A stretch of 64,000 bases of DNA from Ranitomeya imitator (GCF_032444005.1 NC_091288.1:221650001-221714000); one strand, 5' to 3'. Numbered from the stretch's first letter, positions 18,637-53,491 are shown. The notes: a model not told the origin generated them from the sequence alone. Translations and numbers: made by a program.

Positions 18637-18787
18637 GATCGTCTTTTCCGCCAGCCTTCACTTACACTGGATTACAACAAGTGGGTTGCGTAGAGCAATT
18701 ATGGCTTTTATGGCTCGTGAAGCTCAATGCAAACCAGATGATTAGGTTTCACTTGTTATTTTTTTTATGTCACCACTTGGTTTCCTG

Positions 18788-18812
18788 ATTTGCATTCACT
18801 TGTGATTTGCAT
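18788..18812. promoter_or_regulatory. Two perfect POU octamers upstream of the 17713-18636 gene
   Basis: ATTTGCAT at 18788-18795 and 18805-18812, plus near-matches at 18727-18734 and 18817-18824. Confidence 0.5.
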
Positions 18813-19191
18813 TCTGATTTGCAAAGTGGCACCAAAAATAGGACATTTGAATTATTTTTTTTCTGTAGAACGTCCAGCCATTTTTTTTCCGCCTTATTAC
18901 GAATTGTTAAAACATAATTAGACAATTAAGAAAACGCATAAAAAAATCAATGTAGCAAGTTAACATATTATTTTAAGAAAAAAAGGTCCGCGACATCTGT
19001 TCTCGTGCTGACAACCAAGTCAGTATTGAGTTTGAGTAGGTCAGCCTTACACGGACAAGACCAAATGACCAGACATGAAGATTGCTCGTTAAGCATCGTT
19101 TCTGTACGACAGAGTACAATGTGATTGCTGTATGTTCCCCAGGTGGGATTGGTTTCATCTCTTACTTATCACTGCCTGAAAACAGGGATTA

Positions 19192-19728
19192 AAACACCTA
19201 AGTATATCCTACATATAAGGCCATGAAGAAAACAACAAATAAGCCACCAAAAAGAAACACCTTCACTTAAGGCCAATAAAATCCACATAATCTTTATTGA
19301 ACATTATAAAAACAATGTAAGTACAAAAGGTATATAACCACAGGCACAGGTAACAACAGGTGGGTAACCCAGGTAGTAACTTCAAAATATAGCATATAAA
19401 TACGCAACAATACTGTATCTAACAACTGTGTGACCATGTACAATCAAACACAAAAGTAAGAGTAATGTAGTAATACAAGTGTATAAGAGAAACAATAATG
19501 TAGTATAATTACCAATGGAGTACTCCTGGGGACCCACCATACCCGACGCGCGTTTCGCATAGAAATGCTTCGTCCAGGGGTGCATGGTCACACAGTTGTT
19601 AGATACAGTATTGTTGCATATTTATATGCTATATACCTTTTGTACTTAAATTGTTTTTATAATGTTCAATAATGATTATGTGGATTTTCTTGGTCTTATG
19701 TGAAGGTGTTTCTTTTTGGTGGCTTATT
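19192..19728. mobile_element. Penelope-like element remnant with inverted pseudo-LTR arms
   Basis: Inverted arms 19236-19337/19629-19730 and ~19387-19438/19582-19633. Flanked by a 15-bp direct repeat TGAAAACAGGGATTA (19177-19191, 19729-19743). Central hammerhead-like motif. Confidence 0.7.
19542..19580 (-). ncRNA. Minimal type-I hammerhead ribozyme-like motif
   Basis: Minus strand reads CCC-CUGGACGA-A-GCA(UUUCUA)UGC-GAAAC(GCGC)GUC-GGG. Stems I and II, GAAA, palindromic stem-III loop and GUC site are present. The core has an extra G relative to CUGANGA. Confidence 0.6.
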
Positions 19729-20176
19729 TGAAAACAGGGATTAGTTTAATCTATCTGTAGATAATGAGTGGCTTGTGTAGAGTAAACCCTTCCTATGGCT
19801 CTACCTGCCATGGAGACAAGGCATGATAAACCAAGCCACTTTTTTAATATCTGTCAAATGTAAAAGATGGAAAATGTAATATAGAAAGTTCTTTTAGCCT
19901 AAATGAAGAACTTGCAGCTAGTCAGATCGGTGACGAATTTATTTCGTTACTTTAGATGAGTATTTCCAACAGTTGCATATCGACAACGCCCAACATTCTC
20001 CGAGGTGCAATAAGTATTTTCCGAGTAACCAAATTATCCATGTAGGAACTTCATTCTTTATTCGTATTACCTTTATATCATCATATAACTATTACAAGCA
20101 TGCCAAAGTTAAGATCTAATAGAGTTTTTTTTAATTGTAAAGTTTATATTGTTTGATAAGGGTTCATTTTTGTTTT

Positions 20177-21094
20177 TCAACGTGTGATCGTCCTGGAGCA
20201 TAAAACTCCTCTACTGGCTTCTCTTAGCTTTGAGTTGCCGGTTATAATAACAAGAGCTTGTGCCATTGGGTAGAAAATTATAAAATACCAACAAAAGAAC
20301 ATAAAAAATTCCAAAAAGTTGAATGTTTGTGAAATTGTATAAATTGCAGCTCCAAGTAGAGTCGTGTGAAGAGACACTAGAAGCACCATGGTCCTGACCG
20401 CTCTTACATGGACCTCTGTGCGAAAATGACAAGAGTTAGCTTTATTCGAGCGCATCCTCTTCATGTGTCTCCAAAGTGAGCTCACGGTCATCCCAATAGG
20501 GATAAGAGTTAAAATGAGAGGTAAAATGCACCCCAAAAATACTATCTGCTCATATGGAGATGACACAGCTATGGAGCGTTGTTCCCTAGTATGATTGTAG
20601 GTAGAATTTCCGATAACTTCTACATTTATTACATCATAAATGTTCCAAAATGATAAAAGACACAAAATGAATGAAGCAGCAGTGGAAACCACCAGAAGCT
20701 TTGGTAAAAGTCGAGAAATCCTTGTTTTGCAAACTAAAAAGATTCCTCTTGTGAAATGAACAATTCTCATGCAATAATAGATGGAAATCCACGCGGTCAG
20801 CCATACATTGGAGGAGATAAGAAAGATGAAAAGTCCTATACAACTGAGATGAATCTGGTCGAATGAAGAGTAAGATTTCGTCTGAATCGAGGTCATGTCG
20901 AAACATAGTACAACTTGCAATGCTATGTTGATGAGACCCATAAACGTGAGAATCTGATCAGGCAGACTTGGGTGGAAACCTCTTCTCCAGCCTTTGGCAT
21001 TGACATGAACAATCCATGAGTTTAGGACGAGTCCGAACACTCCCGCAGCCATATTTGCCAATAGCTTTACTGCTAACAGAGCAGGAGGATCCAT
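20177..21094 (-). CDS. TAS2R: TAS2R-like bitter taste receptor, 305 aa, intact
   Basis: Likely ATG (MDPP) at 21094; the track start at 21172 is a TTG. Motifs PDQIL, NVWLTAWISIYYC, SLWRHMK, HVRAVRTM, ITGNSKL. Paralogue of the 17713 gene. Confidence 0.93.
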   Translation of the reverse strand: MDPPALLAVKLLANMAAGVFGLVLNSWIVHVNAKGWRRGFHPSLPDQILTFMGLINIALQVVLCFDMTSIQTKSYSSFDQIHLSCIGLFIFLISSNVWLTAWISIYYCMRIVHFTRGIFLVCKTRISRLLPKLLVVSTAASFILCLLSFWNIYDVINVEVIGNSTYNHTREQRSIAVSSPYEQIVFLGCILPLILTLIPIGMTVSSLWRHMKRMRSNKANSCHFRTEVHVRAVRTMVLLVSLHTTLLGAAIYTISQTFNFLEFFMFFCWYFIIFYPMAQALVIITGNSKLREASRGVLCSRTITR

Positions 21095-21166
21095 GATGCA
21101 GGTTCTCCAGGGATTTCCACCTGCAGTGACTTTTGTAGTGCGGGTAAAGTCATCATTTGTGTGCGG

Positions 21167-21174
21167 ATGCAAAT
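21167..21174. promoter_or_regulatory. POU octamer 73-80 bp upstream of the 21094 ATG
   Basis: ATGCAAAT exact match. Confidence 0.5.
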
Positions 21175-21427
21175 CATTTGGTTAGGTATTACTTTGGATC
21201 ATCTGCTTTGCATACAACTCTTCCATGAATGAGTGTGTCCATGATCAGTGAATCACCATCCTTAATATTTACCCTTTCATGGAGGTGTAGGTAAGTAACG
21301 ACCATCATGGGTAAAGTGTCTAGAGACCTCCAAAGTTGAGCTAATTGGCACACACAGGCCAATATTTCAGTCAGATCTTTGACATAATCTTTAAGAGGCT
21401 ATAGAGATGAGCAATTAGACTTGATAC

Positions 21428-22108
21428 TAGTGTTGAGCATTCCGATACCGCAAGTATCGGGTATCGGCCGATATTTGCGGTATCGGAATTCCGATACCGA
21501 GTTCCGAAACGTTTGTGATATCGAGAATCGGTATCGGATCCCTATTAATGTGTAAAATAAAGAATTAAAATAAAAAATATTGATATACTTACCTCTCCGG
21601 AGGCCCCTGGACATCACCGCTGGTAACCGGCAGCCTGCTTTGCTTAAAATGTGACCGCCACGCGACTAATCACAAGCCGCGACGTCATTCTCAGGCCCTA
21701 AACTCCTCATTCTAGGAATTTAGGACCTGAGAATGACATGGTCACATGAGCGGCACGCGACCAATCAGAAGCCGTGACGTCATGGAAGGCCCTAAACGCG
21801 CTCATTTTAAGCAAAGAAGGCTGCCGGTTACCAGGGGTGATGTCCAGGGACCTCCGGAGAGGTAAGTATATCAATATTTTTTATTTTAATTCTTTATTTT
21901 ACACATTAATATGGATCCCAGGGCCTGAAGGAGAGTTTCCTCTGCTTCAGACCCTGGGAACCATCAGGATACCTTCCGATACTTGGTGTCCCATTGACTT
22001 GTATTGGTATCGGGTATCGGTATCGGCGATATCCGATACTTTTCGGGTATCGGCCGATACTATCCGATACCGATACTTTCAAGTATCGGACGGTATCGCT
22101 CAACACTA
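21428..22108. mobile_element. hAT-type MITE with CCGATAC/GTATCGG subterminal repeats
   Basis: TIR TAGTGTTGAGC / GCTCAACACTA. Perfect 8-bp TSD CTTGATAC at 21420-21427 and 22109-22116. Confidence 0.93.
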
Positions 22109-23221
22109 CTTGATACTAATTGACTTTGTATTAATTTTTAAAATAATTCACTTAATCTGAAATTCTTACACTTTGCAATATTGTTCACTCGGAGCGCTGA
22201 AAATGCCCCCCCATTTTACATATTGCATAAGAGAAGAATTACATGATAACAAAAGCATCCACAAAATTCCTTGCAGCTATCATACCATAAGGCATAGCAT
22301 AGGAAATTAGGAGACACACTTATAAAAGCTAAGGCAGGGAATGCAGTGGCCATTTTGTGGTGAATCTGGATGATGAGAGAATGTCACAACTCACAGTTAA
22401 ACAATAGGGGGAGAACGGCAAGAGAAATTGTAGAGATAGTGTGTAACAGCACAACAATGGAGAGCATTACTAAGTCTGTGCTTGTGTTAAAGAGCTTGGG
22501 TTCTAAGGGAATAACATTTTTCCTTGTGGAGAGTCACAAGCCAGACCTGAAATGTAAGAGTGAGGAGACATATAAGCCATGTTTATATGAGACATGAGAC
22601 AATTTGCATATTTAAATGCTTTAAAGAGGTTGGATACAGACCTGGGGGACGTCAGACTGTTACACACATCTTTTTTTAGGCAATTGGAGTCTTTGCTGTG
22701 CTTTTGATTGAAAGTGCGTTAATTTGCCACAAAATGAACGTCTTTGAAGAAAAATTTGGTTCAGCTATCAAATTCGAATTTCAGAACATTTTCTAATTTC
22801 TAAAGGAATGGAACAAAAATAATAAAAAAACATTTACATTCATTTTAGTTTTTGTACTATAAAAGTATTCAATGTCAAACTATGGGAATGCGGAATTTTC
22901 TAGAAAATTTGATCATTTGTAGTTTAAAGTTTCAAAGATTTTTCAATTTCTGTGTCTTTCATATATGTGTCAGATTACAAGAAGATGAATTATTTGTCTT
23001 TATTTATCGAAGCTCTAAAGGCAAAGAGCAGTAAGAGGGAAAAGACCTGATTCCTGCCTGTGTGACCTGATGGAAATGTTCATCAGTCTTATGCCCTCTC
23101 GTATTATGGAGGCCTCAGATTACAAAGAAAAATGAAAGTTTTTCTCTTTCATTCACTGGTCATATAACTAATATAGTAATATTTTACTATCTACTTACAT
23201 TCTCATCACATCTCGTTAGAT

Positions 23222-24107
23222 TTAGGTCTTAACTGCTTTGTTCCCTTTTTTTAAATAAAACAAATGTCCAAGAAGAGTCTTCCTAAGCCTCTCGCTGCTT
23301 TGGATGATGATGATGGCTTCCGACATTGGGTAGGATACAATTACAAACCAGATGGTTAACACTACGGCATCGGAAACAGAGGGTGGGAGCATGAAGAAGG
23401 AAACAACCACCACAATGTAGATAACAGAGATGAGAATAAACAGGATCATGGTTCTGGTAGCGATAATTTGGGTTTTGAATTTAGAATGAACATTATTCTG
23501 CTTCATTCTCCACGCGTGATTTATAAGAGACCAGGAAGTCAACATGGTGGAGACAAGAGCTATAACCTAGGGCAAAGAGAAGCCCAGGATGGTAGATATC
23601 ATTCTGTAGGTAACATCTTGAATAAATGTCCCTCGCATAACCAATCTTTGTGTTACTAAACCAAAATATCGGAGCACATATGGCAAGAGAACCAAGTCCT
23701 GATACTAGAAGGATGTGGAGCAGGTGAGACGAGAGGCTCCTCTTCAGCCAAGCTAAGACTCGGTGACCCCTCGTGGTGGTATTGGTGTAGTAGTAGACAC
23801 AGAGCAAAGCCGTCAGCCAAAAATTATAAATGATGAAGAACATTAAAATCATTATAACACTGAGAAAAACTTCATTTTTAGAAAGCATATATGGCCAAAA
23901 CATAAATATGACATTTTCCGCGCACATTGAAAGATTCAGGGAGATGTTGAGCAGAGCCTTGGTGAGGAGGACTTCATCAGGTGGGCTCAGGGTGAAGCCA
24001 TTTCTAAGGTTTCCAATATACACGAGCAAGATGTAGAAGTTCATGGCTATTCCAGATAAATATTCAATAATTGCAGCTGTGAGAACGATCACTTCTGCTG
24101 AAGCCAC
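23222..24107 (-). pseudogene. TAS2R: TAS2R pseudogene, subfamily A (copy A1)
   Basis: Start is GTG where paralogues have ATG. ~26-nt net loss in ECL2 causes a frameshift. In-frame TAG at 23567-23569. C-terminus in ORF 23222-23545. Confidence 0.9.
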
Positions 24108-24163
24108 AGTGCCAAGAGTTGTGTGTCTTACGAATGTGAGAAGTCAATTATTAGGATGGAAAG

Positions 24164-24171
24164 ATGCAAAT
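24164..24171. promoter_or_regulatory. POU octamer upstream of copy A1
   Basis: ATGCAAAT 57-64 bp from the start, same position as in A2 and A4. Confidence 0.5.
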
Positions 24172-24864
24172 GTCCACCGAGCTTCAGCTACCTATTTACG
24201 TAACTCCATTATGCAAAGACGCTCTCCATGACTGTACAGCTATACCTTATTCTATACTCACGCATGACTCAATATCATATTTTGTAGAACTCCTCCAAAA
24301 TTAAGACATTAATTAAATTTACAAATAATGATCATCAGGAATCTATGATGGTGTGGGTGGATCAGGTTTGGAAGATGCAGCTTCCACACAATCCTTGGGC
24401 TTTGGGCTCCAGGCAACAAGGTGCATATGCTCAGAATAAATGCCATCTAACTGTTCAAAATCCTGAAGATTATCGCAAGGCTTTGTCCATTATCAGCATC
24501 ATGAACTGTCGGCAGATGCACTTATGTTTAAATTAGGAACATATTTGCCTTATGAATTATGCAACAGTCGATAGGTTTGTTTCCTCTTTTATTTGTGCTA
24601 CAGGTGAGGATCCATTTTGGGATTGGTGCACATCGCAAACCTTACCCTGAAAAATATCCAACCTTTACTTTTAAAGGGACCCATTAGATTAATGAGACCA
24701 CCTTGACGATGGTTGATGGGCTCACACTATTTGGCCAAATCCTGTGCTAGGCATCTCTCAAATATTTTTCCTAATGTTCAAAAGCCATTTTGCTATTCAT
24801 ATTTCATGTATTTCATATTAGACAATGCTTTGGCACGATAGAGTGCAACCTTTTCTTGTATATC

Positions 24865-25100
24865 AGCCTCATTAGAAACCTTTAGATTGACCAAGAAGTA
24901 ATGGTCTGAAAGGAGCACGGCTACATGGCTTGCTTCAGAGTAGAGCAAGGCGTCAGACAAGCCTGCATTCTGTCACCATTTCTCTTCAATTAATATGCAG
25001 AAGCTAATTTCAGGAAGGCCGGACTTGCTGAAAAAGAAGAAGGAATCAAAATTGCTCGACAAATTATCAGCAGTCATAAAAGCGCAGGTGATACAGCACA
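24865..25100 (+). mobile_element. RTE-clade (BovB-like) LINE reverse-transcriptase relic
   Basis: Translates LIRNL*IDQEVMV*KEHG..FRVEQGVRQACILSPFLFN*YAE..RKAGL.EKEEGIKIARQIISSHKSAGDT, collinear with the RTE/BovB RT core as I recall it. Confidence 0.7.
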
Positions 25101-25120
25101 GGTTACAGATGTGTGAATCA

Positions 25121-26613
25121 TAGTAACATAGTAACATAGTAAGGCCGAAAAAAGCCATTTGTCCATCCAGTTCAGCCTATATTCCATCATAATAAATCCC
25201 CAGATCTACGTCCTTCTACAGAACCTAATAATTGTATGATACAATATTGTTCTGCTCCAGGAAGACATCCAGGCCTCTCTTGAACCCCTCGACTGAGTTC
25301 GCCATCACCACCTCCTCAGGCAAGCAATTCCAGATTCTCACTGCCCTAACAGTAAAGAATCCTCTTCTATGTTGGTGGAAAAACCTTCTCTCCTCCAGAC
25401 GCAAAGAATGCCCCCTTGTGCCCGTCACCTTCCTTGGTATAAACAGATCCCCAGCGAGATATTTGTATTGTCCCCTTATATACTTATACATGGTTATTAG
25501 ATCGCCCCTCAGTCGTCTTTTTTCTAGACTAAATAATCCTAATTTCGCTAATCTATCTGGGTATTGTAGTTCTCCCATCCCCTTTATTAATTTTGTTGCC
25601 CTCCTTTGTACTCTCTCTAGTTCCATTATATCCTTCCTGAGCACCGGTGCCCAAAACTGGACACAGTACTCCATGTGCGGTCTAACTAGGGATTTGTACA
25701 GAGGCAGTATAATGCTCTCATCATGTGTATCCAGACCTCTTTTAATGCACCCCATGATCCTGTTTGCCTTGGCAGCTGCTGCCTGGCACTGGCTGCTCCA
25801 GGTAAGTTTATCATTAACTAGGATCCCCAAGTCCTTCTCCCTGTCAGATTTACCCAGTGGTTTCCCGTTCAGTGTGTAATGGTGATATTGATTCCTTCTT
25901 CCCATGTGTATAACCTTACATTTATCATTGTTAAACCTCATCTGCCACCTTTCAGCCCAAGTTTCCAACTTATCCAGATCCATCTGTAGCAGAATACTAT
26001 CTTCTCTTGTATTAACTGCTTTACATAGTTTTGTATCATCTGCAAACATCGATATTTTACTGTGTAAACCTTCTACCAGATCATTAATGAATATGTTGAA
26101 GAGAACAGGTCCCAATACTGACCCCTGCGGTACCCCACTGGTCACAGCGACCCAGTTAGAGACTATACCATTTATAACCACCCTCTGCTTTCTATCACTA
26201 AGCCAGTTACTAACCCATTTACACACATTTTCCCCCAGACCAAGCATTCTCATTTTGTGTACCAACCTCTTGTGCGGCACGGTATCAAACGCTTTGGAAA
26301 AATCGAGATATACCACGTCCAATGACTCACCGTGGTCCAGTCTATAGCTTACCTCTTCATAAAAACTGATTAGATTGGTTTGACAGGAGCGATTTCTCAT
26401 AAACCCATGCTGATATGGAGTTAAACAGTTATTCTCATTGAGATAATCCAGAATAACATCCCTCAGAAACCCTTCACATATTTTACCAACAATAGAGGTT
26501 AGACTTACTGGCCTATAATTTCCAGGTTCACTTTTAGAGCCCTTTTTGAATGTTGGCACCACATTTGCTATGCGCCAGTCCTGCGGAACAGACCTCGTCG
26601 CTATAGAGTCCCT
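25121..26613 (-). mobile_element. CR1 LINE, 5'-truncated, with an open RT frame (ORF 25225-26622, 465 aa)
   Basis: [28 protein letters not shown] and FADD motifs. (CATAGTAA)n tail. Candidate TSD AATCA at 25116-25120 and 26614-26618. No endonuclease domain. Confidence 0.96.
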
Positions 26614-31275: not shown

Positions 31276-31351
31276 TTAACACTTGTACTTTTGAAATAAT
31301 TTTTACTTTTGCCCAATACTGTAAAAATATATAATGTGGTTGACAGACATA

Positions 31352-32956
31352 CAGTGGGGCAAAAAAGTATTTAGTCAGTCTGCAATAGTGCAAGTTCCAC
31401 CACTTAAAAAGATGAGAGGCGTCTGTAATTTACATCATAGGTAGACCTCAACTATGGGAGACAAACTGAGAAAAAAAAATCCAGAAAATCACATTGTCTG
31501 TTTTTTTTACATTTTATTTGCATATTATGGTGGAAAATAAGTATTTGGTCAGAAACAATATTTCATCTCAATACTTTGTAATATATCCTTTGTTGGCAAT
31601 GACAGAGGTCAAACGTTTTCTGTAAGTCTTCACAAGGTTGCCACACACTGTTGTTGGTATGTTGGCCCATTCCTCCATGCAGATCTCCTCTAGAGCAGTG
31701 ATGTTTTTGGCTTTTCGCTTGGCAACACGGACTTTCAACTCCCTCCAAAGGTTTTCTATAGGGTTGAGATCTGGAGACTGGCTAGGCCACTCCAGGACCT
31801 TGAAATGCTTCTTACGAAGCCACTCCTTCGTTGCCCTGGCGGTGTGCTTTGGATCATTGTCATGTTGAAAGACCCAGCCACGTTTCATCTTCAATGCCCT
31901 TGCTGATGGAAGGAGGATTGCACTCAAAATCTCACGATACATGGTCCCATTCATTCTTTCATGTACCCGGATCAGTTGTCCTGGCCCCTTTGCAGAGAAA
32001 CAGCCCCAAAGCATGATGTTTCCACCACCATGCTTTACAGTAGGTATGGTGTTTGATGGATGCAACTCAGTATTCTTTTTCCTCCAAACACGACAAGTTG
32101 TGTTTCTACCAAACAGTTCCAGTTTGGTTTCATCAGACCATAGGACATTCTCCCAAAACTCCTCTGGATCATCCAAATGCTCTCTAGCAAACTTCAGACG
32201 GGCCCGGACATGTACTGGCTTAAGCTGTGGGACACGTCTGGCACTGCAGGATCTGAGTCCATGGTGGCGTAGTGTGTTACTTATGGTAGGCCTTGTTACA
32301 TTGGTCCCAGCTCTCTGCAGTTCATTCACTAGGTCCCCCCGCGTGGTTCTGGGATTTTTGCTCACCGTTCTTGTGATCATTCTGACCCCACGGGGTGGGA
32401 TTTTGCGTGGAGCCCCAGACCGAGGGAGATTATCAGTGGTCTTGTATGTCTTCCATTTTCTAATTATTGCTCCCACTGTTGATTTCTTCACTCCAAGCTG
32501 GTTGGCTATTGCAGATTCAGTCTTCCCAGCCTGGTGCAGGGCTACAATTTTGTTTCTGGTGTCCTTTGACAGCTCTTTGGTCTTCACCATAGTGGAGTTT
32601 GGAGTCAGACTGTTTGAGGGTGTGCACAGGTGTCTTTTTATACTGATAACAAGTTTAAACAGGTGCCATTACTACAGGTAATGAGTGGAGGAAAGAGGAG
32701 ACTCTTAAAGAAGAAGTTACAGGTCTGTGAGAGCCAGAAATCTTGATTGTTTGTTTCTGACCAAATACTTATTTTCCACCATAATATGCAAAAAAAATGA
32801 TAAAAAAACAGACAATGTGATTTTCTGGATTTTTTTTCTCAGTTTGTCTCCCATAGTTGAGGTCTACCTATGATGTAAATTACAGACGCCTCTCATCTTT
32901 TTAAGTGGTGGAACTTGCACTATTGCTGACTGACTAAATACTTTTTTGCACCACTG
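31352..32956 (-). mobile_element. Full-length Tc1 transposon (IR/DR type)
   Basis: TA TSD at 31350-31351 and 32957-32958. ~205-bp TIRs with outer and inner AAGTATTT(A/G)GTCAG repeats. Intact transposase inside. Confidence 0.97.
31568..32590 (-). CDS. Tc1 transposase, 340 aa, DD34E
   Basis: Paired-like N-terminus. WSDETK, QHDND and PDLNPIE motifs with 34 residues between the second D and E. No stops or frameshifts. Confidence 0.97.
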
Positions 32957-33385: not shown

Positions 33386-34297
33386 TTAAGTCCCAACCTC
33401 TCGGTTACTACTCGCCCTAAAAAAAAACTTCCTTACAAGAGTCTTCCTAAGCTTGACGTTGCTTTGGATGATGATGATGGCTTCTGATATTAGGAAGGAC
33501 AAAATAACAAACCAGAAGATTATTGTCTCAACACTGAAGGTCCCGGGTGGGACAGTGAAGTAAAAATAGAGCGTAACATTGTAGATTACAGAACTGAGGA
33601 GAAACAGGATCATGGTTCTGGTGGCATTAATCTGGGTTTGCAATTTAACATGAGTATCATTCTTCTTCATTCTCCACATGTGATTTATAAGAGACCATGA
33701 TGTCAACGTGGTGGAGATGAAAGCTATAGAAAAGGGTATGATGGAGCTCAGGGTGGTAGAAATGATTCTGTATGTTGTATGTGGATGGAGTGTTCCTTGG
33801 GAAAATGTGGATTGACGTGTGCTGTTCCCGGCAGATTTTGTGCCAGTAAGCCAAAATACCGGAGAACATATAGCAACTGAGCCAAGTCCTGATACCAGAA
33901 GGATGCGGAGAAGGTAAGACGAGAGGCTCCTCTTCAACCAAGCAAAGCCGCGGTGACCCCATGTGATGATGTTGGTGCAGTAGTAGACACAGAGAAGGGC
34001 CGTCAGCCAAGAATTATAGGCAACTACGAACAAGTCACTAAACATAAAAAAGAAAAAAACTCCCTTTGTATAAAACAGAAATGGCCAAAAAAATATGACA
34101 TTTTGTAAAAGCATCACTAGTAGCGTAGAGACATTAACCATAGCCTTGGTTAAGTGAATGATATCCGATGGGCCCAGAGAGAGGCCATTTTTCAGGTTTC
34201 CTTTGTAAATGAGCAGGATGTACAGGTTTAAGGCTATGCCCACCACATATTGAAGGATTTCAGCAGCAGTCACACCGATCAGGACTGCAGACGCCAT
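33386..34297 (-). CDS. TAS2R: TAS2R-like receptor, subfamily A (copy A2), 303 aa, intact
   Basis: ATG (MASAV) at 34297. Motifs LGPSDII, NSWLTALLCVYYC, GNST, SLINHMWR, INATRTM, IQSNVKL. Confidence 0.92.
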   Translation of the reverse strand: MASAVLIGVTAAEILQYVVGIALNLYILLIYKGNLKNGLSLGPSDIIHLTKAMVNVSTLLVMLLQNVIFFWPFLFYTKGVFFFFMFSDLFVVAYNSWLTALLCVYYCTNIITWGHRGFAWLKRSLSSYLLRILLVSGLGSVAICSPVFWLTGTKSAGNSTRQSTFSQGTLHPHTTYRIISTTLSSIIPFSIAFISTTLTSWSLINHMWRMKKNDTHVKLQTQINATRTMILFLLSSVIYNVTLYFYFTVPPGTFSVETIIFWFVILSFLISEAIIIIQSNVKLRKTLVRKFFFRASSNREVGT

Positions 34298-34353
34298 CGC
34301 ACCGAAAGTTCTGTGTCCTATCAAAGCGAGCAGCCAATTATAAGACTAGAGAG

Positions 34354-34361
34354 ATGCAAAT
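34354..34361. promoter_or_regulatory. POU octamer upstream of copy A2
   Basis: ATGCAAAT 57-64 bp upstream of the ATG at 34297. Confidence 0.55.
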
Positions 34362-34739
34362 ATCCTTGGAGTTTTAGTTACTCATTTTCATAACTCCATC
34401 ACACAATCAAACAAGATCTGTGACTGAGATTACAAGGACTAAACATCTAACATAAATTATGTGCTCACTGCTTCAGACATTATTCATGTCAGTTTCTCTG
34501 GATAATGATAAACCTCAATACCAGAACTCAGACAATCACTTCTAAACGGCTATGTTTCCCACTCATTAAATAATAAGTGACCTCCGATGTCAGCGCCTTT
34601 CCTCTGGTGTTAGCAATGGCTCTCGGGGATTGTGTGACATTGTTAAGGCATGAGTTCCCTTCAGCATTGGCTTCACTCTTCCCTTCTTCAGGCAAATCTC
34701 ATACATCCAGAGAAAGTGAGAGACCAGCATGGCATGGAA

Positions 34740-35111
34740 TATTTCTGCCTCATTTTCTGTAGATGTCTTAAAAGCGAAGAGTTCGTCAACGTGATAGAGA
34801 CCATGATAAGTAGAAATGGCACGCAACATCCTACAAATGACGCAGATTGTATGTGAAAAGGCTGAAGATGGAAAGACCCACTGATAAATTTTGGATCAAG
34901 GCTGCTATTCAGAGGGTATTGTAGAGTGACCTCCACAGTTGCTGTCCAGATGGTGGGAAGACTAATGAAGAAACTGCCGGCTGCTGACAGAAGAAGAAGA
35001 CGTGGTAGATACATTGAGATGTTCCTCTTTGACCAGACGAAGAATGGATGACTGAAGGTAGAGATGGTGACACAGTAATAGATGCAGAGCCAGGCAGTGA
35101 GCCAGAAGGTG
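34740..35111 (-). pseudogene. TAS2R: Internal fragment (TM3-TM5) of a subfamily-B TAS2R
   Basis: FWLTAWLCIYYC...MYLPRLLLLSAAG...GCCVPFLL...SSLLRHL, closely matching the 49236 and 53492 genes. Both ends are missing. Confidence 0.88.
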
Positions 35112-35140
35112 TTGGCTGCTGCTAGAAGAAGAAGACCTAG

Positions 35141-35260
35141 TACACTCCCTGACAGAAATTATGTCATTTATCCATGTTATGTAAATAAAAGCTTATAACC
35201 TGACGTTACATTCATCCATTCGTTGTATAAATTATTATTTTGAAAGCTGAAACCCTCATC
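35141..35260. mobile_element. Probable Tc1-type terminal fragment
   Basis: Begins TA-CACTCCCTGACAGAA, resembling a Tc1 TIR from recollection. No partner end seen. Confidence 0.35.
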
Positions 35261-43518: not shown

Positions 43519-43777
43519 TTAAGTCTCAGCTTCTCGGTTATTACTTGCACCTACAAAGAACTTCCCGAGAGTCCTCCTAAGCTTGACGCTGCTTTGGATG
43601 ATGATGATGGCTTCTAAAATTAGGAAAGATATCAAAACAATCCAGATGGTTACTGCAACAAGATCAGAGCCTTTGTGTGACACGGTGAAGTAGAAGTAGC
43701 TCGCTACATTGTTGATTACAGCACTTAGAAGAAACAGGATCATGGTTCTGGTGGCATTAATCTGGGCTTGCAATTTA
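43519..43777 (-). pseudogene. TAS2R: 3' fragment (TM6-TM7) of a subfamily-A TAS2R (copy A3)
   Basis: LQAQINATRTMILFLL...IQSSVKLRRTL. The 5' two-thirds are absent and replaced by cluster spacer sequence. Confidence 0.9.
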
Positions 43778-44313
43778 GAAGGAGAATTGCTATTGATTTA
43801 CCCAAAAATCCAAATATTTGTTAAAATTGATAGCGAATCACTCATTTCTACTAGATATTCTGTGTAAGAAACATTGATGGGATTTACATTTCACTTTTGG
43901 TCATTCACTTTGCATGTTGTTGATTGTTAATAGTTTTATTTTAACACCTCTATTTTTTAAATTATTCTAACTTTGTAGATTTTTATCTGTACCTGCATTA
44001 CACCTTTACTTAATATCGTATATGTATATATAATGTGGTTGACAGACTAACATACTAAATGAAATATCCAAGTCAGTGAGACAGACATGAAAAGACAAAA
44101 CATTTTTTACTTTGTATTATAAAATGCATAGATTTGATTGTATAAAGATGAAATTGGAGTTTTCTAGATGTGATGACACAATTCTAAATTTTAATTAGCG
44201 CAAAGTTACAATTTTCGAAATTGATTTCTGTCTGAAATCTTACTTCCCACATTTTCCGGTGGTGAAATAATCATTATGCCAAACATTACAGAAAATTGAC
44301 CATTGGTCTAAAG

Positions 44314-44496
44314 TAGTATTTCCCAAACTCCAGTCCTCACGGACCCCACAGGTCATGTTTTCAGGATTTCCATAGTGTTGCACTGGTGAGACAGTTCCTG
44401 ATGCCTTGATGATACTTCCACTACTTGCGCAATACTAAGGAAATCCTGAAAACACGACCTGTGGGGTCCGTGAGGACTGGAGTTTGGGAAACACTG
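44314..44496. mobile_element. hAT-type palindromic MITE (same family as 15325-15510)
   Basis: Perfect 8-bp TSD GTCTAAAG at 44306-44313 and 44497-44504. Inverted arms. Confidence 0.92.
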
Positions 44497-44705
44497 GTCT
44501 AAAGTCTCGAATTTCATCACCAGCTCAATGTAAACACTGTTATGCCCTCCTTATTATAAATTGCCTTAGAACCCAAATCAGACTCTAAATTGCTTTCTTT
44601 CCCTCGGCGTTATGAGGTCAAAGACATTTAAAAAGAAAACTATACTTTATTAAGAATTTGAAAACTAAATATTGCTGTGTAAAATTTATTACGACCTTCA
44701 AGATG

Positions 44706-45610: not shown

Positions 45611-45667
45611 AGCGCCGAGAGTTCTGTGTCTTATGAAAGCGAGCAGTCAATGGCAGGACTAGGAGAG

Positions 45668-45675
45668 ATGCAAAT
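45668..45675. promoter_or_regulatory. POU octamer upstream of copy A4
   Basis: ATGCAAAT 58-65 bp upstream of the ATG at 45610. Confidence 0.5.
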
Positions 45676-46825
45676 GTCCACTAAACTTTGGTTACTCATT
45701 TACATAACTCAATTATACAATCAAACAAGGTCCGTGACTGAGATAAGATGAACTAAACATCTGACATAACTTCACTCACGAAAATTACACTTTAATCAAT
45801 AGACCTTGGAGTAATAATAATTTCCACAATTAGATGTGATCAATAAAATGTTCCTGTGATGAGATAATCTTATAAATGTGCCCCTGCTGTGTACTGTGTA
45901 ATGGTCGTGTCCGACCATACAGGAATATGGTCTGATCGTAACACATCTGCTGGGCAGGGGAGGACACATGTTAGTGTATCAATTTGTGTGAAAAATGAAA
46001 AAAATGGTGGCCAGTTATCATCTAGCTTGATTCTGATTGCTGGAAACTGGCTGCAAAACACAGTGAACTCCTCACCACGGCCTCTGGTCTGCTCCTCTTT
46101 GGTCCTCACTTCCTTCTGGGTTTTAGAGTGAGCGATGCCATTGACTCTGCCACTTGCCATTAAATGGGGTGCGGCACTAGTTAATAAAAGGCGACATGTC
46201 TCATGTGGCCTCATGATGTCAAGCGTTGCTGGTTGTAGTCACTGGCGGTGCCGGCAGGAAGAATCTGGTGCAGGAACATTGACTTGCTGGAAACAATGGA
46301 AGCCGAAGTTGGTTTTTGCTCTCCTGCTTCATTAGACAGAGTGGTTCCATTGCCCCGGCTTTAAAGTAATGTCATTTTTTCTCTATCATCCTCCAAGCAT
46401 CATAACATCTGATGATATTCACAAGCTCATCCACCGTACCGTCAGGGCCTACGGTAATCAACAACTTCCACAATTGTGAGTTATCGCAGCTTCCTTCTAC
46501 AAAGGGATTTCGTAACTACGGCATCACATGACTTGGTTTAATTAAAGATTCTAAAGTCGCCAAGTAACAATAGAGATGAAGAGGAGAACTGTGCAGAGGC
46601 CGAAGCTCTAAGATCTGAGCTTCTTATGAAAGCTAGCAGGAAGAGATTAGCGGATCAGGCAAAACTCTAACAAATCACAAATTTAAAGTCCCTTATTATG
46701 CTCTGTGCTCTCTCCACAATCCATCCACTATATAATCATCTAATTCTGTCTGTTTGTCTGTAATAGAAATCCTGCGTCGCTGATTGGTCGTGCCAGCCGC
46801 CCGCGACCAATCAGCGACAGGCGCA

Positions 46826-48470
46826 TAGTTCAGTCACAGTGTCAGTCACAGTGTGATGTAGTTCACTCACGTTTACTGAACAAGTTCTGTCAGTCACAGT
46901 GCCACGTAGTTCACTCACGTTTACTGAATAAGTTCTGTCAGTCACAGTGCCACGTAGTTCAGTCACGTTTACTGAACAAGTTCTGTCAGTCACAGTGCCA
47001 CGTAGTTCAGTCACGTTTACTGAACAAGTTCTGTCAGTCACAGTGCCACGTAGTTCAGTCACGTTTACTAAACAGGTTCTGTCAGTCACAGTACCACGTA
47101 GTTCACTCGCGTTTACTGAACAAGTTCTGTCAGTCACAGTGCCACGTAGTTCACTCACGTTTACTGAATAAGTTCTGTCAGTTACAGTGCCACATTTACT
47201 GAACAAGCTCTGTCAGTCACAGTGCCATGCAGTTCTGTCACGTTTACTGAACAAGTTCTGTCCGTTACAGTGCCACGTAGTTCATTCACGTTTACTGAAC
47301 AAGTTCTGTCAGTTACAGTGCCACGTAGTTTAATCACGTTTACTGAACAAGTTCTGTCAGTCACAGTGCCACGTAGTTTAGTCACGTTTACTGGACAAGT
47401 TCTATCAGTCACACTGCGACATAGTTCACTCACGTTTACTGAGCAAGTACTGTCAGTCACAGTGCCACGCAGTTCAGTCACGTTTATTGGACAAGTTCTG
47501 TCAGTCACAGTGCCACATAGTTCACTCACGTTTACTGAACAAGTTCTGTCAGTCACAGTGCCACATAGTTCACTCACGTTTACTGAACAAGTTCTGTCAG
47601 TCACAGTGCCACGTAATAATAATAATAATAATAATAATCTTTATTTATATAGCGCCAACATATTCCGCAGCGCTTTACAGTTTAACAGTTTCAAACACAA
47701 AAGTCATAAGTAGCAACGTTAACAATACAATAATTAAAGCAACACAAGCCACCCCTGCTCGTGAGAGCTTACAATCTACAATGAGGTGGGGGAGATACAA
47801 AGTACAGGTGTGTATTTACAATGATGTATTTACAATCATGGTCCAGCCATCTCCAGGGGGTGGGGGATAGATGGAGATAGTGAATGGGCTACACACACAC
47901 AAACATAACATGACTTTGATTAGTGAACGTGATAGCGAGCGCCTAAAACTATGCAAATTGTGGATGGTCCGAATATCTTTGGGTAGAGCATTCCAGAGGA
48001 TTGACGCAGCACGGGAGAAGTCTTGGAGTCGGGAGTGGGAGGTACGGATTAGTGCAGAGGTTAGTTGAAAGTCATTTGCAGAGTGCAGCGGTCCAGTAAA
48101 CTCTTGTTTACTAGACAAGTTCTGTCAGTCACAGTGCCACGTAGTTTAGTCACGTTTACTGAATAAGTTCTGTCAGTCACAGTGCCACGTAGTTCAGTCA
48201 CGTTTACTGAATAAGTTCTGTCAGTCACAGTGCCATGCAGTTCAGTCACGTTTACTGAACAAGTTCTGTCAGTCACAGTGCCACGTAGTTCAGTCACGTT
48301 TACTGAATAAGTTCTGTCAGTCACAGTGCCACGTAGTTCAGTCACGTTTACTGAATAAGTTCTGTCAGTCACAGTGCCATGCAGTTCAGTCACGTTTACT
48401 GAACAAGTTCTGTCAGTCACAGTGCCATGCAGTTCAGTCACGTTTACTGAACAAGTTCTGTCAGTCCACA
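46826..48470. repeat. 48-bp minisatellite, interrupted by L2
   Basis: Unit GTTCTGTCAGTCACAGTGCCACGTAGTTCAGTCACGTTTACTGAACAA. Gives the 16-aa periodic ORFs. Confidence 0.96.
47614..48093 (-). mobile_element. L2 3' end (same family as 11040-12981) nested in the minisatellite
   Basis: (TAA)n tail at 47614-47638, followed by the reverse complement of ~12480-12960. Confidence 0.92.
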
Positions 48471-49235
48471 AATTCTAGAATACCTGATGCATTAGAATCG
48501 GGCCACCATCTAGTAGCATAATAACCATATTATGGAAAAAGTAATACAAATCTGTATTCTCACCTCTCCAGCCCGTCCGCTCATCGCCATCACCTGTCCG
48601 GGCATCACCACAGTCACTCTAGGCTGAGACTTCCGGGTTCGCTATGCTCGCAATGGTTCGGCACATGTGGCTGCAAAGGTTGTGGTGCACGGTGGGCTGT
48701 TACCTTAATGGTCGCATGCACAGAACTCTCCTCGTAAACCCGGAATCCTCTGCCCAGCGACTGAGGCACAAGGGATTTCAGCGCTGCCGACGCCAATCCG
48801 AACAAGTGATGATGACTGGACGGGTCAATATCTTTTTTCTGGCAAATGCAATGTACGTGTAAAAAGTAAGTGATGAAAAATGTTCGAAAATGACAAAATC
48901 TTTCACCAGAAACAACTCCACAGACTTTTTTACATACGAACATTTATCACTTCGCGCTGTACGACACTATGGTGCGTTTTGTTATTTATATTTAACATGA
49001 ATGAAGATTAAAAAAAAAACATATTTGATATACGAGTTATTAAAAAAGTATTCATCTTGTGATTTTTTTACTCAACTTTTGCAAATTGTAAAAATATAAA
49101 CTAAATGGTGGAGTATTTCGTAATGTACGGCACTATTGTACTAAAACAATAGGAAAATAGAAAATAGAAATATTCCAGTTTTCACACTAATCACTAGAGG
49201 AGACACAAGACCGACTCTTCCTAATGTTTAATTTC

Positions 49236-50159
49236 TCACAATTTTCTGTAAAAGCACAGGATCTTCGCCATGATTTGCCTCCTGAGCTTGGGGTTGGCAA
49301 AGGTAATGACGAGAGACTCTGCCGTTGGAAAAGACATAAATATCAACCAGTTGACAAGTGTTAAATAATTTTCAGGGTTGGGGCTTAGAGAAAAAAACAA
49401 AATTTCGCTTACACAAAATATGATGGAAATTGTAAGGAACAACCACATGGTTCTTACGGCATTAATGTGAGCCTGGTATTTGGTTTGGGACAATCCAGAT
49501 TCCTTCTGCTTGATCCTCCACAGATGTCTTATCAGTGAAGAGTTGGTCACTATGATAGAGGCCAAGATGAGTAGAAATGGCACGTAACATCCTAGAAATG
49601 AAGCACTTTGTATGTATAAAGGCTGAAGATGGTAAGTACCACTGATAAATATCTGGCCAAGGCTGGTGTTCACAGCAGATTGTAGAGTGACTTCCAACGT
49701 TGCTGTCCAGATGGAGGGAAGACTAATGAAGAAACAGATCACTGCTGACAGAAGAAGAAGATGTGGTAGATACATTGAGATGTTCCTCTTTGACCAGACG
49801 AAGAATGGATGACTGAAGGTAGAGCTGGTGACACAGTAATAGATGCAGAGCCAGGCAGTGAGCCAGAAGGTGAAGTATACGAGAGTCAGCATGACCACAG
49901 TGATCGGGACAATGATCTCCCTAACAGACACTGAATAAATGAAGAAAATGTATAGTAGACCCTGGATGCTGAACAGAGACGGGAGAGCGATGTTCACCAC
50001 TCCGATGACAAGGTGGAGAAGATCCGGAGGATTCAGCTTTGGTCCAGTCTTCAGGCTCTTGACACCAGACACCATGATGCACACGTTCAGAATATACCCA
50101 ACCCAACTGTCCAAGAAGCCGAGGAGTATCACAAGGATCACCACTGTACTTGGCATCAT
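49236..50159 (-). CDS. TAS2R: TAS2R-like receptor, subfamily B, 307 aa, intact
   Basis: Motifs FWLTAWLCIYYC, NTS glycosylation site, SLIRHLWR, HINAVRTM, FPTAESLVITFANPKL. Confidence 0.93.
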   Translation of the reverse strand: MMPSTVVILVILLGFLDSWVGYILNVCIMVSGVKSLKTGPKLNPPDLLHLVIGVVNIALPSLFSIQGLLYIFFIYSVSVREIIVPITVVMLTLVYFTFWLTAWLCIYYCVTSSTFSHPFFVWSKRNISMYLPHLLLLSAVICFFISLPSIWTATLEVTLQSAVNTSLGQIFISGTYHLQPLYIQSASFLGCYVPFLLILASIIVTNSSLIRHLWRIKQKESGLSQTKYQAHINAVRTMWLFLTISIIFCVSEILFFSLSPNPENYLTLVNWLIFMSFPTAESLVITFANPKLRRQIMAKILCFYRKL

Positions 50160-51350
50160 GAACCTCCTGTGGATGCGTTTTTGTTTGAACCAGAAATGTA
50201 TTGGCTAAAGTTAAAAAAAAATCCTATATTTTATGTATGAGTTATGCAAAACGCGTTTAGCATGAGTTTGCTTTTACCCACTTTTGCAAATCAGATGTTT
50301 TGTTTGCACCTTGTTTCAATGATGTTGAAGTGTAACCACGCCTCGCAGTGTGAGGGTTACGGCTAAACCCATCTCTATGCAATCTTTTTTTGACTGCTTT
50401 TGTTAATAAGCCATTCATATTATTTCTCATGACGACACTGTGCAAACAGGTTTGTACTTTTTACACTTTATAGAGTGTATATAAATGTATATAATCCTGG
50501 CCGTGCACTGCAATTGTGCAGTACTGGTCTTTATGTTTCAAGAATATACAAACAACTTAAAGTGTATCTTATGCAATGAATGTCTACTAATGAGTGAGTC
50601 TAATATATACAGTATGGTGCTATTTTGTTTGTCCATGTATTGACTGTGTCATAAATGTCCTGCCTGTTCCCTGGGATCCATCCTGTGATGACGTCTGTCC
50701 GAGGGCAGTGTCTGATGTTCTCCACCTGTGCCTGTGCTACGCCTGAGGCCTGAGAGAAAGGTTCTCCTGATATGCCCGTGCCAGATGACCCTGGGCTGCT
50801 TCAACCCATGATGACCTCTTGCCATCGTCTGATGTCTGCTGTCCAGTGACGTTCACCCTTCCTTGATGTGCGGAATCGGGAGCCTACATTGTCATGCCTT
50901 GTGTTCTGTATGATGGCTTTATCTAAGAAAACTTTATGGTTCTTCATACCTGAAGTTATGCGGTGCCATCTAGTCCTGCATGTCACCACCTTGCCCACAT
51001 GTTCAGCTGCCACAGATCCCAGTCATTGCCCTTCCCTAGTCCGGATAGGTCCGGGTCCCCCTCTGTGGTCCAGTGGGTCCACATTCCATTACCACCTGGG
51101 ATGCATGCTCCACATCGTCGTGGGAGCGTAAGCTAGCCGCTTCCGTCGTGACACATCACTTCTATGGAGCGAGGCTCTGCCCTTCTTATGATGGAGCTGG
51201 CCAGTGGGCACTGCTCACTAGAGGGCATGGTCTCGCTGCATACAAGAGTATGGAGAGCGTGACCATGCCCACTGGATGGGAGTATGTATAACTCATATAT
51301 ACCCTCCAGTCTCGGGACTGAAACCGGCGAATCCCCGCAGCGCAGTAAGT

Positions 51351-52469
51351 TGCCTGCCAGGGCCATGGGCTACTTGGTACCGGGTCCAGTACTTCACAGG
51401 GGGGTGTCACGGTGGTGACCCAGTCCGTGACCCTGGGCGCCCATGTAAAAGGGGAAATGTCTTTAGGGAATTGGTGAATAGAGTTGGTGGCGCCACCTGT
51501 GGTATTCGGTCAGTAGGGACCGATGCTGCTTTAAGGGGTTCTCTGAGGTGATGTTATGGCAGCTAGATGGTATACCTTCCCACAGGTGAAGTATATCCAC
51601 AGGACTCCCAGTGTGTAGATAGTAGATGGTGAGTGGTGCAATAAAGAACGAGGACACAGGTTTGCAGTCTCTTTACCTGGTTTACTGAAGACTTCAATGG
51701 CCACAGTCCAGGGCACCAGATCACAGGGCAGGCAGGGTCTGGCCAGTTTGGAAGCGAATCCAGAGTCCCCTTTACCAGGTGGAGGTAAAAGCCTTCCTCT
51801 AGCGCGGTGGTGTTGTAGTTCCTTACTGCCTATGGCTTCAGATAAGGTCCTCACAGTTCTTATCTCTGTCCCCCATATAGGATAGGACAAAACCCGTATG
51901 ACTGGTGACTTGAGCCTGTTTATAGGGACTCTAACATGCCCCGGGCTCCACAGGTGTCACCATGTCTCCTCGGTATAAGGCGGACAGGTAACTTGCAGTT
52001 CAGCTGCCCTGCCGGTCTCTGCTGTAATACGTGGAGATCCGTACAACCTCAGTATTCCGGCTACCGGTTAACTGCGCCTCAGAGGGAGGCAGCCTGCTCG
52101 TAGCTGGTCTCCCCTGATATCACTTTCCTGTGCTTCACTCTCCTTCATGCTCACTGACTGATGTCCTGCTTTCTGTATAATCTCCTTTCCTGGGAGCTGT
52201 AGCACTGTGGCTACACAGCTCTGTTTAACCTTGCCCTGCCTCAGACTGCTCCATTCTGCTTCCTGGCAGTAACTGTCCTGTCTTTCCCACCAAACCACAA
52301 TATATATAGGTGAGTCACCTAGTAAATAGGATCAAAAGCTCCCCCTTGTGGCCTGGAGTGTGAACATGTTGTGTGCATTGTGATTACCTGGTGAGAGTTA
52401 TCTTTCATCGCTTCCAAACGTAATATCACTCTCCCCGTGAGGAATGCAATGCTAGTTTGGGGTGCCGCA
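51351..52469 (-). mobile_element. LTR-like element between the head-to-head TAS2R pair
   Basis: Minus strand begins TGCGGCACCCC and resembles amphibian Gypsy-type LTRs from recollection. No matching TSD found, so the left boundary is uncertain. Confidence 0.45.
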
Positions 52470-53491
52470 CACAGTGCATGCGCCCGAGAACTCAGAAGTC
52501 TCAGTCACACAGAGTGACCCCAGACTGAGTGATTTAGACCAGACAGACCCTTTAATGCACCAATGGTATTGGGAAGGAGTTGGTTATCCCCAGAAACAGA
52601 TTGTCTAATGTGCTAGCCTGTGTCCAGGACGGATGCAAGTTATTATTTTTAGATTAAGAAGAAACCAGTATCTAAGGAACTTTCTATCCCGAGAGCTTGT
52701 TTGTGTGTGTTGGTTTTACATTCACTGGTTATCAAAATGTGCAGAGCCACATCAAAAAATAAATGTCATTGTTTCACACGTCAACATTTCAATGCTTTTA
52801 TTTTATCCCTTAAATTCCAATGCCGAATTAAATCAGATGACATGTGCCGCAAAACATGCGGGCTCAGCGCTGGAGCCTACATGGAGTGTGGGGAGATGAC
52901 CAATGACGTACCTATATGTCATAGGCCCAAGGTTGCTCTGAGTTAACGCATTGAGTTGCTGATGACATTTCGGAGTCATGAGTATACAATGTATTTTTTT
53001 CCCACTTTTTTACAGTATTAGTGCTGGAGGTATCTGACAGACACCTTACAAATATTATCACCTTAGAGTCAGCCAGGAATAACTGACTGTTAGGCTCACT
53101 GGGTGAGGTGGATTCTCCAAGCCAAAGGTGTGAGTAGGCACAGAGGCCACGGCTGCAATGTATTACCAGTATGATATATATATTGTAAACTTTAGAAAGT
53201 AGGAAAAGTACGAATCTGAGAATGCAGCATTGTCATCAGCGTTATTACAAATGGCCTATTAATAGCAAGCAAAGTAAGATTGCTTCGAGCCCGATGTAGA
53301 CATATCCATAACACTGCGCTGCCTGGTGACACTCTGCAACATCGTTTGATTGGAAATGAGGTATAAACACCTGATTTGCAAAAGCAAACTCAGGCAAAAC
53401 GCTTTTTGCATAACTTGTGCATCAAACATAAAATCTTTTTTTAACATCACCCAATACATTACTGGTTCGAAGACTCGTCCACCGGAGGTTC

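Follow-up and report, generated by a model that had tools for sequence, protein, structure and literature searches.

Octamer promoters in described systems

The immunoglobulin V genes offer the first point of comparison for the frog bitter taste receptor (TAS2R) promoters described here, their own promoters combining an octamer with a TATA box and being read by Oct-1 or Oct-2 with the coactivator OCA-B. In both cases the genes form a large, fast-evolving multigene family whose members keep ATGCAAAT or ATTTGCAT and have a short leader, the site lying a few tens of bases 5' of what in most of the frog genes is a candidate TATA-like box, and the orientation of the proximal TAS2R site is that of the octamer in V-kappa promoters. 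The two differ in gene family and cell type, and the putative frog promoters mostly contain two sites and are variable at octamer position 8. POU2F3 (Skn-1a), which specifies the TAS2R-expressing cells of mammals and together with OCA-T1/T2 acts as the master regulator of type II taste and tuft cells, provides a second parallel: the motif is the same and adenine 5 is kept, but mammalian POU2F3 is described as a lineage specifier that works mostly through enhancers. Histone H2B and snRNA genes likewise have an octamer near the core promoter, read by Oct-1, and the TTTGCATAAC/TTTGCATACC found directly 5' of the TATA-like box in the frog B group recalls the H2B box; those genes, however, are ubiquitous or cell-cycle expressed.

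OCA-T binding requires adenine at octamer position 5, position 2 is contacted by the POU-specific domain, and the OCA-B and OCA-T coactivators are homologous (PMC12755459). In mouse type II taste cells open chromatin is enriched in POU motifs and the Tas2r promoters are selectively open, and the same recent study termed the cis-regulation of taste receptor genes understudied (PMC10239704). The literature searched contained no description of a family-wide octamer in TAS2R promoters and nothing on a role of frog POU2F3 in taste or on amphibian pou2f3/OCA-T in TAS2R cells; the words promoter, motif, regulatory, transcription factor and POU are all absent from the main amphibian TAS2R survey.

Octamer sites upstream of the TAS2R genes

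The window, a 64,000-nt stretch of Ranitomeya imitator DNA, is a TAS2R cluster with eight start-bearing genes or pseudogenes, and a profile search matched all eight start-bearing ORFs to Pfam PF05296 at 41-153 bits (cut-off 22.2). All five starts at 18636, 21094, 24107, 34297 and 45610 are on the minus strand. The genes are as follows.

6594..7501, plus strand: G1, TAS2R with a 277-aa ORF, the C-terminal part lying in a different frame (frameshifted); no heptamer
17713..18636, minus strand: G2, intact TAS2R, 307 aa, Pfam PF05296 (E 5e-41), 94% identical to a Ranitomeya variabilis locus
20177..21094, minus strand: G3, intact TAS2R, 305 aa, Pfam PF05296 (E 1e-44)
23225..24107, minus strand: G4, TAS2R pseudogene, frameshifted, homologous start GTG
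33386..34297, minus strand: G5, intact TAS2R, 303 aa, Pfam PF05296
44709..45610, minus strand: G8, TAS2R pseudogene, frameshifted
49236..50159, minus strand: G9, intact TAS2R of subfamily B, 307 aa, Pfam PF05296
53492..54421, plus strand: G10, intact TAS2R of subfamily B, 309 aa, Pfam PF05296

Octamer and octamer-like sites upstream of these genes are listed below, with negative numbers counted from the start codon.

6480 and 6537: one-mismatch ATTTGCTT pair upstream of G1, the exception to the pattern
18727..18734, minus strand: G2 proximal sense site GTTTGCAT, heptamer TTTGCAT (18727-18733) at -97, invariant in six hyloid genera
18788..18812, minus strand: G2 distal pair of exact ATGCAAAT copies, at -159 and -176, 17 bp apart and antisense to the proximal copy
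21167..21174, minus strand: G3 proximal exact octamer at -80, reading ATTTGCAT on the gene strand
21207..21213, minus strand: G3 distal antisense heptamer ATGCAAA at -119, kept in five of six G3-group genes
24164..24171, minus strand: G4 proximal exact octamer, sense ATTTGCAT, at -64, with a further sense heptamer at 24211-24217
34354..34361, minus strand: G5 proximal exact octamer, sense ATTTGCAT, at -64, kept in the Dendropsophus and Anomaloglossus paralogues
45668..45675, minus strand: G8 proximal exact octamer, sense, at -65
50244..50251, minus strand: G9 proximal sense site TTTTGCAT, heptamer at -91, in a block kept in Bufo; exact octamer in Pseudophryne
50284..50291, minus strand: G9 distal one-mismatch site ATTTGCAA at -132; CTGATTTGCAA kept in Bufo
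53374..53381, plus strand: G10 distal one-mismatch site ATTTGCAA at -118
53404..53411, plus strand: G10 proximal sense site TTTTGCAT, heptamer at -87

The original prediction had placed exact octamers at 18788, 18805, 21167, 24164, 34354 and 45668 and one-mismatch copies at 50244/50284, 53374/53404 and 6480/6537. Every one of these was found where it had been placed, the exact copies lying 57-176 bp upstream of five starts. Two features had been overlooked, namely the third G2 copy, in proximal sense orientation at 18727-18733, and the occurrence of sense TTTGCAT at a similar distance from the start in all subfamilies but G1.

This core heptamer is present on the sense strand at -63 to -97 in seven of the eight window genes. 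Genes of the G2 and G3 groups have in addition an antisense copy, at about -97 to -184. The distal site lies 28-62 bp 5' of the proximal one; its form is antisense ATGCAAA(T) in these two groups, while genes of the G5 group have a ATGTAAAT-like sequence and those of group B have ATTTGCAA. Position 8 of the octamer is variable, with A, G or T preceding TTTGCAT, and ATGCAAA is present in all conserved sites, that is, positions 1-7 are intact with adenine at position 5. Flanking bases differ from group to group, leaving TTTGCAT as the sole sequence common to all groups.

The ATTTGCTT pair before the gene at 6594 had also been proposed as octamers, a proposal that we do not uphold: position 2 is broken and the gene downstream is frameshifted. 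As functional octamers the pair is weak, given the mismatch at position 2 and a background in which one-mismatch octamers are frequent by themselves (0.29 per 200 bp).

Enrichment, fixed position and conservation

The window contains 15 exact octamers, as opposed to 4.4 +/- 2.3 in dinucleotide-preserving shuffles. Six of the 15 lie within 200 bp upstream of TAS2R starts, a zone (8 x 200 bp) making up 2.5% of the window, where 0.23 would be expected (Poisson P 1.7e-7), and the same zone holds 11 copies of the heptamer TTTGCAT versus 0.46 expected (P 3e-12). Nine exact octamers are located elsewhere, and two of these (12617 and 47951) belong to one repeat in opposite orientations. The enrichment holds when paralogues are collapsed, the sense site being present in five of the six subfamily groups (P about 2e-10).

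Across 30 TAS2R starts from ten frog genera, a set of orthologues and paralogues that are not independent trials, 22 have a sense heptamer at -110 to -55, an interval picked post hoc with the data already seen (per-gene chance 0.008). Placement in these 30 genes follows strand, sense copies falling only between -120 and -60 and antisense copies only between -200 and -97; no heptamer lies between -300 and -200 or between -60 and 0. The proximal 300 bp contain 4.56 heptamers per kb, and the corresponding figures are 0.15 for coding sequence, 0.11 for the downstream flank and 0.33 for sequence further upstream. Of the 22 intact ORFs, 21 have one or more exact heptamers in their upstream regions, and an unbiased ranking of shared k-mers placed TTTGCA, TTTGCAT and ATTTGCAT first at k = 6, 7 and 8, respectively.

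In an alignment of the G2 orthologues of six hyloid genera, AATGCAAATC is the longest stretch without variation (10 columns) and TTTGCAT the second longest (7 columns); the distal octamer duplication at this gene, meaning the second copy, is confined to dendrobatids in the orthologue comparison. The upstream regions of G2 and G3 are 40% identical and not alignable, yet both sites are present in both. The octamer element was found also in Bufo and Pseudophryne. The one gene at the Lithobates locus has ATGCAAA at -129 and ATTTACAT at -94, fitting the pattern (n=1), and an exact sense octamer, at -139, is present in one of two Anolis genes and absent from the other, too few to judge (n=2); a look-up of TAS2R records for Latimeria returned no record. 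Conservation is not uniform. Leptodactylus retains the G3 proximal octamer, which is degraded in Phyllobates, R. variabilis and Engystomops. Decay of the proximal site is seen in four genes of the G3 group, in one intact gene of Leptodactylus and in the B gene of Anomaloglossus.

Repeated sites could arise by chance, from base composition or by unselected hitch-hiking in promoters that were duplicated recently, and the copies are indeed paralogous within G4, G5 and G8 (about 66-79% identity over -120 to 0) and within G9 and G10 (76%). However, the site persists between frog families and between subfamilies that share 28-33% protein identity and have unalignable upstream DNA, while heptamer density in the control regions is 14- to 40-fold lower. 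This explanation, already contradicted by the enrichment, the k-mer ranking, the orthologue footprint and the local controls, is in our estimation wildly improbable. The proposal of a proximal element common to divergent amphibian TAS2R subfamilies is instead borne out by fixed position and strand, the top-ranked k-mer and the most invariant orthologue block. Judged from these comparisons, the octamer site is a proximal element maintained by selection and is most simply regarded as a putative POU class 2 binding site. Its conservation about 60-180 bases 5' of the start codon in ten frog genera points to direct POU-family control.

Putative promoter architecture and candidate binding proteins

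We consider it probable that frog TAS2R genes have a short proximal octamer promoter read by a POU class 2 protein, with POU2F3 and an OCA-T-type coactivator the likeliest pair. The promoter of each gene would comprise about 120-200 bp, the most constrained parts being one or two ATGCAAA/TTTGCAT sites. The proximal site, TTTGCAT on the coding strand 60-100 bp 5' of the ATG, would be followed in most genes by a TATA-like box, and a POU class 2 homeodomain protein bound to the octamer sites would drive transcription from a predicted start about 15-50 bp 5' of the ATG. Candidate TATA-like boxes in the window are as follows.

18705..18712, minus strand: predicted G2 box CATAAAAG at -76, partly conserved in orthologues
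21130..21137, minus strand: predicted G3 box TACAAAAG at -43, TATAAAAG in Phyllobates
34337..34343, minus strand: predicted G5 box TTATAAT at -46, in a block reading TAATAATTGAC in relatives
50224-50235, minus strand: putative G9 box CATAAAATATAG, downstream of the proximal site
53427-53434, plus strand: putative G10 box CATAAAAT, downstream of the proximal site

The boxes lie 9-28 bp downstream of the octamer in most genes and are weak or absent in several, including weak forms in the Dendropsophus, Leptodactylus and Pseudophryne copies. Transcription might alternatively start far upstream, so that the octamers would sit within a 5' intron or within a long 5'UTR and serve as an intronic enhancer, or would not be promoter elements in any sense. 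The G5 group has a conserved pyrimidine-rich block, CTTTC.TAAG, ending AAG or TAG at about -25, that could be a 3' splice site, in which case the octamer would be intronic; a TTGAC/CTAAT block at about -45 is a possible branch site. The candidate acceptor, however, varies (AAG, TAG or GAG) and in the G2, G3 and B groups is missing or lacks conservation, and a by-eye check for splice sites near the ATG in all groups found none conserved as a YAG acceptor or GT donor. Paralogue conservation, moreover, collapses beyond about -120 to -300, and TATA-like boxes lie downstream of most sites, making a distant start improbable. Four small RNA runs yielded nothing on G2, G3 or their upstream regions and only repeat-like scraps at 19194-19582.

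Returning to a proximal promoter read by a POU protein, the heptamer is conserved in both orientations, and recognition is therefore expected at the DNA level, which speaks against an RNA element. A reading by some non-POU factor is further disfavored by the fact that TTTGCAT alone is shared among groups whose flanks differ, and we give this pair of explanations, non-POU or RNA-level, very little credence. C/EBP, forkhead and Rbfox were considered as readers and rejected, their consensuses misfitting some of the groups.

Because POU2F3 specifies the TAS2R cells of mammals and all sites keep the adenine at position 5, we infer that the binder is most plausibly POU2F3 with an OCA-T-type coactivator. 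It is possible, though rather unlikely, that the sites are functional but read by the ubiquitous POU2F1 (Oct-1) or another POU protein, contributing basal strength while the choice of cell type is encoded elsewhere. The octamer core is common to all class 2 POU proteins and sequence cannot separate POU2F3, POU2F1 and POU2F2, but the class 2 factor of mammalian TAS2R-expressing cells is established to be POU2F3, and positions 1-7 are kept in all sites, including the A5 needed for coactivator recruitment. Amphibian TAS2Rs are expressed also outside the tongue, whereas in dart frogs most expressed TAS2Rs are tongue-specific (PMC11798467).

The position-fixed, conserved octamer module provides a concrete, mutable element in front of dozens of fast-evolving receptor genes and, with POU2F3 as its presumed binder, would connect the receptor genes directly with the factor known as master regulator of bitter-sensing cells. 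The module further invites comparison with the promoters of immunoglobulin V genes and with the family of OCA coactivators. More tentatively, TAS2R genes may be direct terminal targets of POU2F3 and OCA-T through a family-wide proximal octamer pair that is at least as old as neobatrachian frogs and perhaps as old as tetrapods. If so, these promoters would correspond, in chemosensation, to the immunoglobulin V promoters that Oct-2/OCA-B reads, and one factor would both specify the bitter-sensing cell and switch on each receptor gene. The compactness of the module suggests that newly duplicated TAS2Rs may keep their expression by carrying with them a self-contained promoter of 120-200 bp.

Octamer cores upstream of the TAS2R genes of the window

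The window contains a cluster of bitter-taste receptor (TAS2R) genes with the start region present at eight loci, all eight of which match Pfam PF05296. The core of the POU-type octamer, the heptamer TTTGCAT, precedes most of these starts.

TAS2R loci of the window, all start-bearing loci matching Pfam PF05296, with heptamer positions counted from the start codon
G1: start 6594, + strand; heptamer element absent upstream of the start
G2: start 18636, - strand; coding-strand TTTGCAT at -97 (18727-18733), antisense copies further upstream at -159 and -176
G3: start 21094, - strand; coding-strand TTTGCAT at -79, antisense copy further upstream at -119
G4: start 24107, - strand, frameshifted; coding-strand TTTGCAT at -63 or -64
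G5: start 34297, - strand; coding-strand TTTGCAT at -63 or -64
G8: start 45610, - strand, frameshifted; coding-strand TTTGCAT at -63 or -64
G9: start 50159, - strand; coding-strand TTTGCAT at -91
G10: start 53492, + strand; coding-strand TTTGCAT at -87
34727-35110: TAS2R fragment without start region, 76% identical to subfamily B
43522-43836: TAS2R fragment without start region
57631-57882: TAS2R fragment without start region

The original prediction proposed octamers upstream of the TAS2R starts as a candidate POU2F3-type promoter code, and all of its octamer coordinates proved right on recheck. The window has 15 exact octamers compared with 4.4 +/- 2.3 in dinucleotide-preserving shuffles, six of them within 200 bp upstream of the eight starts (1,600 bp), where the rate outside those 1,600 bp predicts 0.23 (Poisson P 1.7e-7). 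Nine lie elsewhere. The octamers at 12617-12624 and 47951-47958 belong to one repeat family in opposite orientations, indicating copies carried by a repeat. For TTTGCAT the excess is 29 versus 15.6 +/- 3.4 in shuffles, with 11 of the 29 in the upstream 1,600 bp (0.46 expected; P 3e-12). The predicted pattern is real but was under-described, as coding-strand TTTGCAT occurs at -63 to -97 in seven of the eight genes, including the G2 copy that had been overlooked. G1 is the sole exception, and reading the ATTTGCTT pair upstream of it as octamer copies is without support.

In G1 the C-terminal part lies in a different frame, and G2 is 94% identical to a R. variabilis locus. G4 has GTG at its start position (24105-24107), for which the R. 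variabilis orthologue and the paralogues have ATG; both heptamers are retained in G4 despite the frameshift and GTG start. Four open reading frames lie between TAS2R genes (25225-26400 and 31568-32590 on the - strand, 11519-12148 and 37-567 on the + strand), and by eye their initial residues resemble pieces of reverse transcriptase and Tc1/mariner-type transposase. The translation of overlapping reading frames at 4306-5248 (-) is a repeat of low complexity with abundant Y, V, A, and I; this is probably tandemly repeated DNA and not a gene.

Enrichment across frog TAS2R genes

Within the window, the -120 to 0 regions of G4, G5, and G8 are paralogous (66-79% identity), as are those of G9 and G10 (76%), identity falling away further upstream in both sets. 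The upstream regions of G2 and G3 are unalignable (40%), and each has both kinds of site.

We extended the comparison to TAS2R DNA of Phyllobates, R. variabilis, Anomaloglossus, Dendropsophus, Hyla, Engystomops, Leptodactylus, Bufo, Pseudophryne, Lithobates, and Anolis, with every gene anchored at the homologue of the window genes' initial methionine codon. Sense TTTGCAT was found at -110 to -55, a range picked post hoc, in 22 of 30 frog start regions, where the background rate of the loci themselves gives a chance of 0.008 per gene; related genes are not independent trials. The pattern persisted when paralogues were collapsed, with the sense site in five of six subfamily groups (P ~2e-10, one trial per group), and the margins are big enough to absorb both the post hoc range and kinship. 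Across the 30 start regions, sense copies are confined to -120 to -60 and antisense copies to -200 to -97, with no heptamer at -300 to -200 or -60 to 0. Heptamer density in the proximal 300 bp is 4.56 per kb, compared with matched local controls of 0.15 (coding), 0.11 (300 bp downstream), and 0.33 (-900 to -300). Every strand-specific k-mer of the -200 to -1 interval was enumerated and ordered by how many groups and genes contain it; TTTGCA, TTTGCAT, and ATTTGCAT came top for k = 6, 7, and 8, respectively. At least one exact heptamer is present in 21 of 22 intact reading frames versus six of eight broken genes. In Lithobates the single gene is preceded by ATGCAAA at -129 and by ATTTACAT at -94. 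Of two Anolis genes, one carries an exact sense octamer at -139 and the other carries none.

Footprints within subfamily groups

Over the 250 bp that precede the start, the G2 orthologues of six hyloid genera align with many gaps (64% mean column identity). Two invariant runs stand out, AATGCAAATC at 10 columns and TTTGCAT at 7; no other run exceeds 4 columns. In dendrobatids (18788-18824; Phyllobates L001 and locus L007) the distal G2 site is a tandem duplication of GAATGCAAATCA with a 17-bp period, comprising two exact copies and one degenerate; other hyloids have one copy. For the G3 group it is the distal antisense site that is stable (5/6 genes), the proximal one having decayed in four genes.

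In the B group CTGATTTGCAA and TTTTTGCATAAC are retained, and after them come CATAAAAT and CCAAT-like blocks, with an exact octamer in Pseudophryne and one change, to TTTTGCGT, in Anomaloglossus. CTCATGC occurs 9 bp upstream of the octamer in G9 (50260-50266), G10, and Bufo L008, and is similar to CTCATGA, the heptamer found together with the octamer in immunoglobulin VH promoters.

The G5 group retains ATTTGCATCT at -64 and a ATGTAAAT-like block at -92, and downstream of the octamer sites a TAATAATTGAC block and then a conserved leader. It is possible that a pyrimidine-rich block at about -25 in this group, ending in AAG, TAG, or GAG, is a 3' splice site that would make the octamer intronic; however, the block is not a conserved YAG and the other groups lack an equivalent splice-like site near the ATG. 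Upstream of the octamer, GTTAYGTAAAT is kept at about -92 in G5 (34384-34394), G8 (45698-45708), and G4 (24191-24201), and in the comparison loci L002, L006, L007, and L011. It is readable as an octamer variant (ATGTAAAT) and also matches the PAR-bZIP/NFIL3 consensus RTTAYGTAAY at 9/10 positions, its T/C variation being the change permitted at the central Y.

In each of the five groups, a short (G/C/T)AAAC block of weak information content (0.9-1.2 bits) precedes the proximal heptamer at a distance of 12-16 bp, as at 18746-18750 (G2) and 34376-34379 (G5). The block may be bound by a second factor or be a coincidence.

Hyloid families split at about the Cretaceous-Palaeogene boundary, and the Myobatrachidae earlier. 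Retention of the heptamer across these divergence times points to selection.

Predicted binding protein and promoter layout

Conservation of the heptamer in both orientations points to recognition as double-stranded DNA. TTTGCAT alone is common to all groups having the site; octamer position 8 is constant within a group and varies between groups (A, G, or T). This core is a binding site of POU class 2 proteins, a member of which is the predicted binder. Positions 1-7, including adenine 5, are retained at all sites. Both POU2F3 and the coactivators OCA-T1/T2 contact adenine 5, which is needed for coactivator recruitment (PMC12755459).

In the majority of genes a TATA-like box lies 9-28 bp from the proximal site on its ATG side, so transcription would start 15-50 bp before the ATG. 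Four small RNA runs gave no match to G2, G3, or the DNA upstream of them. The arrangement is similar to that of immunoglobulin V-gene promoters. Which protein binds the sites, where transcription begins, and whether expression is affected are all inferences. In dart frogs, the majority of the TAS2Rs that are expressed are tongue-specific (PMC11798467).

Our literature search found no account of an octamer in TAS2R promoters, and the words promoter, motif, regulatory, transcription factor, and POU are all absent from the main amphibian TAS2R survey. Within the literature searched, cis-elements of this type are known, but had not been described in the TAS2R family.
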